Sequence record: MT995927.1
Strand: one strand, 5' to 3'
DNA length: 64,000 nucleotides
The position numbers were made by a program, and so were the translations under genes. Below, in pieces: positions 1,880 to 18,134 of the stretch (within the stretch, counting starts at the first letter, position 1; each line of letters begins with the position of its first letter). The notes under the pieces were generated by a model, which was not told where the DNA came from, ran no database searches, and worked only from the letters and a program-made list of their open reading frames with translations.

Positions 1880-2204
1880 TAGGAAATACCTCGGTAGATA
1901 GGGATGTTAAATAAGTAACATCCCGATTCTAATACTGCGACCCTGGTTCACTTCGGTGATAACGGTTAGGAGTAGGTTCTGTGAAGTAATCGACTAGTGA
2001 ACTTAGTCTAGGTCGACCTATCACTACACGAGGATGATGGATCACTTAACCGAAAGGAGTTACTCAAAAGGTGACGTGTGATCAAAACTACAATGGATGG
2101 TAAAAGGTCCTAGTGCCAGAGCGCTACAGAGAAGAGCGGAGGTTAAGCTTTGTAGACGACGCTAGGATCGGGCCAGGCTCCGTTGGTGGTCCATTGTAAA
2201 AACT
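1880..2204 (+). ncRNA. Candidate structured non-coding RNA / long structured 3' UTR of chmA
   Basis: No credible ORF; 45-53% GC in the lines counted. Helices 1901-1909:1916-1924, 2089-2097:2190-2198, 2106-2114:2161-2169, 2124-2131:2148-2155, with a possible pseudoknot 2135-2141:2178-2184. Confidence 0.55.
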
Positions 2205-2247
2205 GATATAGCGGCTCCTTCGGGGGCCGCTTATATCTCCTTTTTTT
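2205..2247 (+). terminator. Intrinsic terminator
   Basis: GCGGCTCC-TTCG-GGGGCCGC stem extended by GATATA/TATATC, followed by T7. Confidence 0.9.
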
Positions 2248-2272: not shown

Positions 2273-3517
2273 ATGGGTCTTTATGCCAAAGTTGTTGATC
2301 ATGATGAAGTACATGATCAATTTACGGGTAAACGTATTTATGCCAATGATTACAATACGAGTAACTCAGATGAGAAAGAAGAATTTGATAGGCATTTCTA
2401 TTCTCATTTCCAAGATTCAGAAGCAATTGAAAGTAGCGTAAGTTGTGATTGTCGAGCAATCGAAGACGCACATAAACTCGGAGTAATCTGTGATATTTGT
2501 AATACTCCAGTTGTCAATACTTCTAGCCGCCCTATCGAACCATCAATGTGGGTTCGTACACCAAAACATGTACGTAGTCTAATTAACCCACGTTTAATCA
2601 TTATGCTAACTGGATATCTAGTAACTAAAGAATTCGATTTCTTAGCATATCTAACCGATACTTCTTATCGATACGATGTAGAATCCATTGCCTCTAAAGA
2701 AACACGCAGGAAAGTAGATAGACTACTGCATCGAGGATTTGAAAGAGGATTAAATCACTTCATTGATAACTTCAATGAGATCTTCCAATTCCTACTAGAT
2801 GCAAATATTATCTCTAATAATAAATCCGAATTCGCTCAATTCATTGCTCAGAATAAAGATAAGCTATTCCCTAAATATTTACCAGTTCCTTCTAAACTCT
2901 GTTTCGTAGCAGAATCAACTACATCTGGTACTTACTTAGATAAACCAATTGAAGCAGCAATTGACGCTACCTTAACCTTCGCTAGTATTGATGCATCGTC
3001 TGTACCACTTAGCCCTATTAAAGCTCAGAATAGGACTATGCGAGGACTAAGACTATATGGCCAGTTCTACGAGATCTACGCAAAATCACGAATTGCTCAA
3101 AAGCCTGGTCTTGCTCGGCGTCACATGTTTGGTGCTCGTCTCAACGCTACGGCGCGTGCAGTAATCACTTCTATTAGTGACCCGCATGATTATGATGAAT
3201 TACATATCCCTTGGGGAGTAGGTTGTCAATTATTAAAGTATCATCTAACTAACAAGTTAAAAGCTAAGTTTAACATGACAACTCGTGAAGCATTCTCATT
3301 TGTATATGAGAATGTACTTCAATATAACCAAATCATCGCTGATCTATTTAAAGAGTTAATTGCAGAGGCTGCACCATATAAAGGAATGGGTTGCACTTTT
3401 CACCGAAACCCGACCCTTCAACGTGGATCTACTCAACAATTCTTTATTACTAAAGTAAAAGATGACATTAATGATAATTCAATCAGCATGTCAGTATTAT
3501 GCCTTAAAGCGCCTAAT
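2273..3517 (+). CDS. nvRNAP beta-prime N-terminal subunit, exon 1 (phiKZ gp55-like)
   Basis: N-terminal Zn-ribbon (CDC...CDIC) and RNPTLQ motif. Ends ...LKAPN; joining to 4002 gives the catalytic NADFDGD (487 aa spliced). Confidence 0.93.
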
Positions 3518-4001
3518 CGGACAAGTAACTAACCAAATAAGGTAAAAACAATGGAACAAAACGGAGTAGTGTCCGTCTTTGATCCGGCTTCATTTAAAAT
3601 TGAATATGAAGTGCTTGATAAATACCTTATTAAGTTAATCAAGTCTAGTTCCCCCAGTGAGTAATCATTGGGATGAGTTCTCTCTAATTGCTGGGATATC
3701 CTGTTAAACTAATCTACCACTGCGAGTCGAAAGACAAAGCCAAGGTTTGAAAAAGATTAGGTAGGGCCAATCAGCAGCCAAGCTCCGTAACATTCCATTT
3801 AGGAATAGGAGAAGGTTCAACGACTATTACGGTATCAGGTGCACCGGTCCTAGAAATAGGATGTAGGGTCAAGTGACTCGAAATGGGAGACACCCCACTC
3901 CGAAAGGAAGGGTGAAGATATAGTCTGGTCTGCATGGTAACATGCAGCAGGTGGTAATTATACTACCGGGTATGGATTAACGACCCATACTGAACATAAC
4001 G
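3518..4001 (+). mobile_element. Group I self-splicing intron, 484 nt, no homing endonuclease
   Basis: Exon ends in U3517 and intron ends in G4001. Core P AATTGCTGGGA (3686), Q AATCAGCAG (3769), R GTTCAACGACTA (3815), S AAGATATAGTC (3915). IGS GTCTAGTT 3643-3650 gives a U.G pair at the splice site. Removal restores NADFDGD in frame. Confidence 0.93.
3551..3664 (+). CDS. 37-aa mini-ORF inside intron loop L1 (MEQNGVVSVFDPASFKIEYEVLDKYLIKLIKSSSPSE)
   Basis: SD-like TAAGGT 7 nt before ATG; translated by hand. Confidence 0.45.
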   Translation: MEQNGVVSVFDPASFKIEYEVLDKYLIKLIKSSSPSE

Positions 4002-4220
4002 GCGGATTTTGACGGCGATCAATTGAATCTTACATTAATGCCTGATGTGTATTTAACTAAAGCAACTGAACGCATTGCTCCACATACATGGGTTCTATCT
4101 ATTGATGAACCACATGAAATCTCAGGTAACCTTGAATTACAGGGTCCTGTTGTAGAAACAATTATTAACTGGGCACATGAGAAGTATTTACCACCATTAG
4201 AAGAGTGGTTGAAGTCGTAA
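4002..4220 (+). CDS. nvRNAP beta-prime N-terminal subunit, exon 2 (ADFDGDQLN...; phiKZ gp56.1-like)
   Basis: Begins GCG GAT TTT GAC GGC GAT, in frame with track ORF 4023..4220. Confidence 0.93.
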   Translation, partial: ADFDGDQLNLTLMPDVYLTKATERIAPHTWVLSIDEPHEISGNLELQGPVVETIINWAHEKYLPPLEEWLKS

Positions 4221-17821: not shown

Positions 17822-18134
17822 AATTAATATCTATCCATCTTTTAGGAGGTGAGATGGATGTTTTAAAATTGCCTGCTTGATTTCGAAAGAATCAAGTAAA
17901 TCCTCTCTAATTGCTGGGACATCTCATTGAGACAATCAGCAGCGAAGCTTTCCAGAAATGGATTGAACGTTCAACGACTATCCGGTTACGCGGAGTACAC
18001 TCAAGCGAGTGGAAATGGGAGGGGCCTGACCACCTAGGGTGAAGGTCAAGATATAGTCTGGTCTGCATGGCGACATGCAGCTGCCTGCAATACGAGAGGC
18101 GGGGTAAGCGTAGCGAACTTACTTGAACATAACG
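17822..18134 (+). mobile_element. Group I self-splicing intron, 313 nt, no homing endonuclease
   Basis: U17821 and terminal G18134. P1 GGU|AAUU pairs with AAUUGCC 17867-17873. Core P (17909), Q (17934), R (17969), S (18048). Removal gives FHGG-KGVICKV. Confidence 0.93.

Follow-up and report, generated by a model that had tools for sequence, protein, structure and literature searches.

The spacer that separates the stop codon of the chimallin gene (chmA) from its terminator almost certainly represents a real RNA structure that is under selection. In the window, i.e. the whole 64,000-nt stretch of sequence record MT995927.1 that we analysed, this spacer occupies positions 1880–2204 on the + strand, and its sequence has been selected to keep a multi-domain fold in which domains I, II, and III are followed by the terminator. 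Close relatives do without the element, which is one of several interchangeable cassettes.

Genomic context and non-coding nature of the spacer

The 3' part of chmA, a homologue of PHIKZ054 that encodes chimallin (the nuclear shell protein), lies at 131–1879 on the + strand and ends with a TAA codon at 1877–1879 in the ORF list. In a tblastn search, its product and the shell protein of phiKZ-type phages are 99–100% identical, and the RefSeq records of relatives annotate it as 'nuclear shell protein'. The first 2.3 kb of the window are 100% identical to the corresponding sequences of phages T2P, U1B, U5, and phi9_PA9 and 97% identical to that of phiKZ. The next gene on the same strand is gp55, which encodes the N-terminal subunit of the beta' chain of the non-virion RNA polymerase; its exon 1 (2273–3517) was defined from the ORF list, the annotation of relatives, and a tblastn search with the HPP-Temi protein. 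An intrinsic terminator is located between the two genes at 2205–2247 (+ strand) and consists of a stem (2205–2218:2223–2237) with a UUCG loop and a U run (2241–2247). This element was not listed by a simple consensus terminator scan of the window, and we call it a terminator because of its fold (−22.4 kcal/mol, z = −5.4) and its conservation, the same type of terminator being present in every relative examined, including those that contain no cassette. The start codon of gp55 lies approximately 25 nt past the U run, so that a separate promoter would have little space. Region 1880–2204 is thus positioned as the 3' UTR of chmA and, on read-through transcripts, as the leader of gp55.

A previous reading of this DNA, made from the sequence alone, had described the 325-nt gap between the chmA stop codon and the terminator as non-coding, in agreement with our results. 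The ORFs within 1880–2204 encode only 25–43 amino acids, use GTG or TTG as start codons, and differ between phage groups, and no ORF conserved between phage groups was found in this region. The presence of a small-protein gene was rejected because the small CDSs that some GenBank records place here vary from one group to another. The description of the region as GC-rich holds in part: the GC content of 1880–2204 (45.5%) exceeds those of the whole window (37.5%) and gp55 (37.1%) but not that of chmA (46.8%), and the contrast in composition is therefore real towards the downstream side only. Folding is strand specific. On the + strand, the predicted fold of 1880–2204 has a free energy of −107.5 kcal/mol (z = −3.6), which was equalled by one of 100 shuffled sequences, whereas the z-score of the − strand is −1.2. 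In addition, approximately 12 G–U pairs of the consensus structure would become C–A mismatches on the opposite strand.

Conservation of the spacer and its fold

The spacer is conserved above the genes that flank it. When the window and HPP-Temi are aligned globally, DNA identity is 56% in chmA, 85% in the spacer, and 64% in gp55, and in 100-nt bins it rises from 0.48 to 0.86–0.90 exactly across positions 1901–2200. Between the phiKZ-type phages and the Pawinskivirus group (PS119XW, PA1C, HPP-Temi, BRkr, and phiHQ), ChmA proteins share 49% identity; blastn aligns the spacers of the two groups at ∼84%, whereas the adjoining end of chmA does not align.

The differences that have accumulated in the spacer are informative. 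The alignment of the window with HPP-Temi contains 55 differing columns, and 15 consensus base pairs have been changed, 14 of which are still paired (binomial P = 2e-6, assuming that one-third would be kept by chance). These structure-preserving substitutions favour selection on the RNA fold over a merely recently exchanged DNA patch. In the RNAalifold consensus of eleven phiKZ-type and Pawinskivirus spacers, 99.6% of the cells are paired, compared with 33–42% when the partners are slid; this percentage is inflated because the structure was derived from the same alignment, but the compensatory changes are not, and eight pairs have been changed on both sides and nine to or from G–U. Strand-specific folding, the use of G–U pairs, compensatory changes, and conservation above the flanking genes together bear out the central proposal of the sequence-only reading, namely that the chmA transcript carries a folded RNA that belongs to no Rfam family.

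Domains I and II

Domain I (1890–2032, + strand) is predicted by RNAalifold to be a multi-arm junction closed by the helix CUCG:CGAG (1890–1893:2029–2032). A compensatory change from U–A to C–G is present in this helix in the Pawinskivirus group, and the same closing strands are found in PhiPA3. Arm Ia (1895–1931) comprises the helix 1895–1898:1928–1931 and a 9-bp hairpin (1901–1909:1916–1924) that had already been recognized from the sequence and is present here with one compensatory pair and two G–U changes. Arm Ia as a whole shows two compensatory pairs and two G–U changes in the Pawinskivirus group and is also matched in PhiPA3 by nhmmer, where the sequence of the stem is different again. 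Arm Ib (1933–1974), also predicted by RNAalifold, comprises the helix 1933–1942:1964–1974 and a UUCG hairpin (1948–1951:1956–1959), which corresponds to the UUCG-capped stem noted previously. The arm and its UUCG stem are invariant between phiKZ-type phages and the Pawinskivirus group and therefore derive no support from covariation; the sequence conservation of the arm far exceeds that of the flanking genes. Arm Ic (1981–2024; 1981–1986:2018–2024 and 1990–2002:2006–2016 in the RNAalifold structure) contains one compensatory pair (U–A to C–G), and its closing GUG...CAC strands are retained in PhiPA3, where a long insert replaces the interior.

Domain II (2040–2083, + strand) is a small three-way junction with the closing helix GAUCAC:GUGAUC (2040–2045:2078–2083), a GAAA hairpin (2050–2057), and a second hairpin (2059–2064:2070–2075). 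Its covariance model, R2, scores 76 bits in the window, 70 bits in phiHQ, and 55.6 bits in PhiPA3, in which the closing helix has been changed on both sides; the match in Phabio is marginal.

Two other helices of the sequence-only reading have to give way to this structure. TAGTGA:TCACTA and ACACG:CGTGT are present in the sequence but compete with the better-supported helices 1981–1986:2018–2024, 1890–1893:2029–2032, and 2040–2045:2078–2083, which show compensatory changes or have been retained in phiHQ and PhiPA3; we therefore regard the two as unsupported.

Domain III and the candidate pseudoknot

Domain III (2089–2198, + strand) is a 110-nt three-way junction that was defined by RNAalifold on a MAFFT alignment, by a covariance model (R1), and by covariation. 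It contains the helices P1 (2089–2097:2190–2198), P2 (2106–2115:2160–2169), and P3 (approximately 2122–2131:2148–2158). RNAalifold predicts the junction independently from a plain MAFFT alignment of seven sequences, in which 21 of the 38 pairs are compensatory. In an alignment that was fitted to the model and that represents three to four independent lineages only, 95% of the cells are paired (28–52% when slid), and 23 of the 39 pairs have been changed on both sides (five to eight in the slid controls). By helix, such changes affect eight of the nine pairs in P1, eight of 11 in P2, and four of nine in P3. The three-way junction proposed from the single sequence is thereby confirmed.

Model R1, the E-values of which are rough, identified 17 instances of domain III (12 of them distinct) with scores of up to 130 bits, and all, whether from GenBank phages, IMG/VR, or a single metagenome contig, are located directly downstream of chmA. 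None was found elsewhere in the 64-kb window, at other chimallivirus loci, in bacterial contigs, or in 41 kb of PhiPA3, and no second copy of either R1 or R2 was detected in the window by blastn-short or with the two covariance models. A search of IMG/VR for the pattern of the two loops yielded eight matches, three of which are real (PA7, L008/L030, and L010/L037; the latter two are contigs of ∼315 kb), and one of two matches in a metagenome scan was also real (L044) and again lies downstream of chmA. By contrast, none of six pattern matches in bacterial genomes was confirmed by the covariance model. Among named phages, the IMG/VR and metagenome contigs are most closely related to Psa21 and D6, which infect Pseudomonas syringae. 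In L030, L037, and L044, the sequences of P1, P2, and P3 differ yet still pair, and both loops are unchanged. The UGGUAAA strand that joins P1 to P2 and the ACGAC-type strand between P3 and P2 are also fixed or nearly fixed. Thus, domain III recurs 3' of chmA in three diverged phage lineages; the variant in PhiPA3 is degenerate, with an R1 score of 68.8 bits and a fold z-score of +0.5.

The two loops of domain III may also interact. AGCGGAG (2135–2141) and CUCCGUU (2178–2184) form a candidate loop–loop pseudoknot of 7 bp, including one G–U pair, that spans 2135–2184 on the + strand. The predicted energy of the duplex (−12.1 kcal/mol) was equalled by 0.5% of loop shuffles and by 0.2% of random segments of the window. 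Both loops are invariant across 11 distinct sequences with varying stems and thus provide no covariation for the pseudoknot; invariant loops on variable stems are expected for a tertiary contact and equally for a protein-binding site. PhiPA3 is the only variant with different loops, and their complementarity does not exceed chance (p = 0.66). In this phage, part of the loop is sequestered by the most stable P4, and, with no close relatives to add, a covariation test through PhiPA3 gave no support for the pseudoknot. Hence, the complementarity that had been noted from the sequence stands, covariation does not back it, and we consider the predicted pseudoknot plausible but unproven. The small arm that had been drawn at 2172–2175:2185–2188 does not pair as written. 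Two registers of this helix (P4) are candidates, namely 2173–2175:2187–2189, which is compatible with the pseudoknot, and 2172–2176:2183–2187, which overlaps it and is the register picked by RNAalifold.

Mosaic nature of the slot downstream of chmA

Among relatives, the spacing between the chmA stop codon and the next gene varies from 12 to 568 nt, and comparison of these spacers revealed extensive exchange of modules. In phiHQ, domains II and III are kept, and a cassette of ∼300 nt takes the place of domain I. This cassette is common to Psa21 (nhmmer E = 1.7e-22), and 19 of its 54 predicted pairs are compensatory in a comparison of two sequences only. PhiPA3 keeps arm Ia, the closing strands of domain I, and domain II, and its degenerate domain III is located inside arm Ic. 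Members of the D6/Psa21 clade have almost the same flanks and differ in the content of the slot, which contains domain III in L030, an extra hairpin plus domain III in L037, and unrelated structured inserts in L024, L027, and L028, and it is almost empty in other members. In D6 itself, a small hairpin that resembles a collapsed P1 is present.

The spacers of D6, Noxifer, and RVTF4 (84–102 nt) and of several IMG/VR relatives (under 90 nt) contain, or have room for, little beyond the terminator, indicating that the array is dispensable; those of Noxifer, RVTF4, and the IMG/VR relatives together span ∼50–100 nt. The position of domain III relative to the terminator stem is also variable, from 6 nt in the window to ∼17 nt in L030 and L037 and ∼200 nt in PhiPA3, where other modules are placed in between. 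The order chmA–gp55 itself is kept, with spacers of 92–230 nt, in Goslar, RAY, Eowyn, RTH11, and DT01. These findings show that the region from the chmA stop codon to the terminator is, in Pseudomonas chimalliviruses, a site at which structured cassettes closed by helices are interchangeable. Since the content of the slot varies at a conserved junction, the array of the window is an accessory elaboration in this group of phages.

Comparison with known RNA families

A cmscan search of positions 1500–2700 of the window against Rfam 15, with E-values of up to 10, returned five chance-level matches, none of which lies inside 1880–2201. The top-listed match, which scored 18.7 bits against a threshold of 55 and lies on the − strand across the terminator, is the only one that touches the 3' edge of the region. 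Seven related loci gave no match at E-values of up to 1. At the gathering threshold, the only matches in the whole window are two group I introns (3627–3947 and 17854–18080), which are the real introns of the window and lie outside the spacer; a group I intron in the spacer itself was rejected because there is no Intron_gpI match.

Several known classes are not supported by these searches. Hammerhead, twister, pistol, hatchet, and HDV-like self-cleaving ribozymes gave no Rfam match at E-values of up to 10, and known riboswitch classes gave none either. A flavivirus-type xrRNA is not indicated, because no Rfam xrRNA matched and the candidate pseudoknot joins L3 and L4 rather than involving the 5' end. 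Nevertheless, the array shares features with the 3' UTRs of eukaryotic RNA viruses (flavivirus xrRNAs and dumbbells and plant-virus 3' translation enhancers): it consists of independently folding, helix-closed modules that have been duplicated, lost, or exchanged, one of them a three-way junction with a possible pseudoknot. It differs from them in being part of the mRNA of a DNA phage and in having no Rfam match to xrRNAs or related elements. To our knowledge, the host possesses no Xrn1-type 5'-to-3' exonuclease, and any block to nucleases would therefore face 3'-to-5' enzymes.

The array can also be compared with the ncRNAs derived from 3' UTRs, which phiKZ is known to make, for example from the 3' UTR of PHIKZ298 (PMC8545117). 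Like this RNA and ncRNA1 and ncRNA2 of PAK_P3, the array lies on the sense strand between the stop codon (1877–1879) and the gene's own terminator (2205–2247), and no promoter is evident. Those RNAs are ∼100 nt long, whereas the array comprises 325 nt and several domains, including two three-way junctions and the candidate pseudoknot; it is also conserved above the coding genes and is known here as a predicted fold. The antitermination RNAs, HK022 put and Bacillus EAR, are likewise folded, possibly pseudoknotted elements of ∼100 nt located upstream of an intrinsic terminator that precedes genes, and the array shares its strand and transcription unit with the chmA terminator, which follows immediately, and with gp55 beyond it. 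It differs from them in sequence and structure (no Rfam match to put or EAR in the window or the seven relatives), in its variable distance from the terminator, and in the divergent polymerases of these phages. Domain III taken separately shares a three-way-junction architecture, a conserved junction and loops, and covarying stems with the purine-riboswitch aptamers (∼70 nt), but it is larger (∼110 nt), lies in a 3' UTR, has no fixed expression platform, and has no Rfam match. Relatives differ in how far domain III lies from the terminator, which contradicts a classical riboswitch layout, and no alternative (antiterminator) pairing between the two was found.

Published evidence on the spacer and ChmC

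In PhiPA3, eCLIP of ChmC gave peaks of high coverage between chmA (gp53) and gp54, i.e. in the homologous spacer, which Enustun et al. (2024) read as small regulatory RNAs (PMC11077065). A ligand of ChmC is thus the only function listed in the sequence-only reading that has outside experimental support. ChmC was reported to have little sequence specificity (PMC11077065), and the peaks could simply reflect RNA abundance. They are also the only hint, an indirect one, that a discrete processed RNA may accumulate from such a spacer. Another intergenic ChmC peak of PhiPA3, between gp203 and gp204, was considered as a relative and rejected, being strongly structured and unrelated to domain III. The dRNA-seq, Grad-seq, and ONT-cappable-seq papers on phiKZ describe other phage ncRNAs and none at the chmA spacer, the Grad-seq supplementary tables examined have no entry for genes at the chmA locus, and a full-text search of the literature on the chmA UTR in jumbo phages returned nothing on an element in the spacer. 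According to dRNA-seq, chmA is transcribed from a primary start site, which is early, and from a secondary one, which is middle.

Possible functions of the array

A conserved terminator directly follows the array, and most chmA transcripts should therefore end with it. We tentatively favour the view that the array is a cis-acting, protein-bound, nuclease-resistant module at the 3' end of the chmA mRNA, although this remains short of an even chance. In such a module, the array would constitute the 3' end of the main shell-protein message and would act in cis as a compact 3' ribonucleoprotein. Folds locked by tertiary contacts might slow 3'-to-5' decay past the terminator hairpin, and the invariant loops and junctions might serve as a docking surface for an RNA-binding protein, for which ChmC is the only candidate with an experimental hint. 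A stable 3' UTR fragment may then outlast the coding part of the message. Against this view, generic stabilization needs no invariant loops, and the array is dispensable, as seen in D6, Noxifer, and RVTF4, which have little beyond the terminator.

An alternative, which appears rather unlikely, is that the array controls read-through into gp55. The folded RNA would act on the phage RNA polymerase or the terminator hairpin and set how many transcripts continue into gp55, in the manner of processive antitermination RNAs (HK022 put and Bacillus EAR) or of an attenuator that responds to a ligand or a protein. The arrangement of the locus fits this idea, as gp55 follows the U run so closely that a promoter would hardly fit, chmA is followed by gp55 after a short spacer in relatives as remote as Goslar, RAY, Eowyn, RTH11, and DT01, and 6 nt separate domain III from the stem of the terminator in the window; a conserved junction and loops on variable stems are also seen in aptamers. 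However, the distance to the terminator is not fixed, being ∼17 nt in the IMG/VR clade and ∼200 nt in PhiPA3, unrelated cassettes fill the same slot, and phages with no cassette retain the same terminator and downstream gene. Neither an alternative pairing between domain III and the terminator nor an Rfam match to EAR or riboswitches was found.

We are similarly doubtful that the array is freed from the 3' UTR as a trans-acting RNA, either as a sponge or decoy for a host factor or a defence protein or as an RNA that base-pairs with a target, in which case the changes of cassette would reflect an arms race. The turnover of cassettes at a fixed slot in close relatives does look like that of accessory or counter-defence loci, ncRNAs derived from 3' UTRs are documented in phiKZ (e.g. 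from the PHIKZ298 3' UTR; PMC8545117), the authors of the PhiPA3 eCLIP study interpreted their peaks as small RNAs (PMC11077065), and L3 exposes GGAGGU, a Shine–Dalgarno-like sequence. On the other hand, the array accompanies chmA strictly in every lineage, which points to action in cis, because a free-standing trans-acting gene could sit anywhere. No match to the array was found in host genomes (none of the six bacterial pattern matches having been confirmed), and the Grad-seq and dRNA-seq papers report no species at this locus. A sponge for RsmA/CsrA was specifically rejected, because GGA motifs are not enriched over dinucleotide shuffles and thus leave no sponge signature. A search for pairing of the conserved loops with the chmA 5' UTR also revealed nothing consistent.

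In purine riboswitches and hammerhead ribozymes, three helices meet at a junction whose strands are conserved, and two of the loops contact each other. The architecture of domain III, with its invariant loops and junctions, resembles both, and an unclassified self-cleaving ribozyme or metabolite-sensing aptamer could be suspected. We regard this as very improbable: there is no Rfam match (E-values of up to 10 in the window and of up to 1 in the seven relatives), the core motifs of the hammerhead are not apparent, an expression platform is not consistently present, and the copy in PhiPA3 has been retained despite the loss of the loop sequences. That the spacer has no RNA function at all, being either a DNA-level signal or a patch that Pseudomonas aeruginosa phages recently exchanged by recombination during co-infection, is scarcely credible and is largely refuted by the covariation. 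The conservation island does begin and end abruptly, at the stop codon and close to where gp55 starts, and modules have clearly been exchanged between phages, but 14 of the 15 changed pairs preserve the structure, the IMG/VR clade has kept the loops while accumulating many compensatory changes, only the + strand folds well, and G–U pairs are frequent.

Returning to a protein-bound 3' module, a wider and more speculative picture, in which we place little confidence, can be drawn. Nucleus-forming phages of Pseudomonas may carry an undescribed class of exchangeable RNA cassettes on their shell-protein message, the RNA counterparts of moron genes, each of which would be a specific ligand of a phage or host factor. 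Domain III would then be a kissing-loop junction recognized by ChmC or another nucleus-associated protein, which would serve to route, protect, or locally translate the chmA mRNA, or else a decoy against an RNA-directed host defence.

Conclusion

In this study, we found that the array downstream of chmA is a real and well-supported structured RNA in a key position of a model phage, previously glimpsed in one eCLIP figure only. Domains I–III and the phiHQ/Psa21 cassette are new RNA motifs that are supported by covariation and have no match in Rfam. They also show that the 3' UTR of a phage can evolve by the exchange of cassettes, a mode of evolution otherwise familiar to us only in eukaryotic RNA viruses. 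No product of a nucleus-forming phage is made earlier or is more critical than chimallin. For phiKZ, the model studied in most depth, the array offers a concrete and conserved RNA handle on the mRNA of this protein: its helices are defined, its loops are invariant, relatives supply natural deletions and exchanges, and there is one candidate among proteins that might bind it. These results bear on how the chmA message, and phage mRNAs generally, are exported, protected, and translated.

Contents of the chmA 3' slot in relatives

In phages phiHQ and Psa21, the slot downstream of chmA (the non-coding stretch between the chmA stop and gp55) is occupied by a different structured cassette of ~260-350 nt (L003 2193-2540 and L015 3283-3545, respectively). 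The two cassettes are similar to each other (nhmmer, E 1.7e-22), and the two phages are members of different genera; in the comparison of these two sequences, 19 of the 54 predicted pairs are compensatory. No Rfam family matched this cassette. Three IMG/VR contigs contain unrelated GC-rich inserts of ~100 nt each in the same slot (L024 3232-3423, L027 3232-3402 and L028 3235-3445). The flanks of these contigs are nearly identical to those of closely related contigs bearing domain III, the three-way junction closed by helix P1.

The spacer of phage D6 is only 87 nt long (L017 3232-3324) and retains a small hairpin upstream of the terminator. The strands of this hairpin resemble the two P1 strands, as though domain III had lost its interior. 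The model of domain II, the three-way junction preceding domain III, yielded a marginal match in the Phabio chmA spacer (L018 3395-3451; 17 bits, E 0.068). This match has the expected strand and lies in the expected slot, and may represent a diverged homologue.

Short hypothetical proteins are annotated within the spacer in several GenBank records, at 1929-2045 (minus strand) and about 2106-2201 (plus strand) of the window, and in two further loci (L004 730-846 and 906-1001; L002 2499-2606 and 2752-2940). Because these proteins lack conservation between phage groups and their CDSs overlap covarying helices, we regard them as probable artefacts of gene callers.

Besides the spacer behind chmA, PMC11077065 names one more intergenic ChmC eCLIP peak in PhiPA3, in the gp203-gp204 spacer. 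This spacer (L065 478-612) is strongly structured as well (-47.2 kcal/mol, z -4.5), and no similarity to domain III was found in it.

Upstream region of chmA

The motif TATAT(T/A)AC is present upstream of chmA in several relatives (L013 1289-1343, L002 573-624, Psa21 L015 1255-1307, D6 L017 and the IMG/VR contig L030), followed ~35 nt later, roughly 25 nt ahead of the chmA start codon, by the palindrome TTCTTGATCAAGA. The contig L037 has the motif and only a variant of the palindrome. This arrangement suggests a conserved hairpin in the 5' UTR, beside the probable early promoter. Both lie outside the window, which starts within chmA.

Group I introns

In a tblastn search, residues 1-414 of the uninterrupted HPP-Temi protein matched window 2273-3517 and residues 414-484 matched 3999-4211 (87% identity). 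The gp55 coding sequence is split (window 3518-4211). Because a group I intron core (3627-3947; Rfam, 80.4 bits) separates the two matched parts, the gp55 stop annotated at 3532 is probably intron-internal. A second group I intron (17854-18080; Rfam, 81.1 bits) is probably located in the polymerase subunit region, where an intron is already known in phiKZ.
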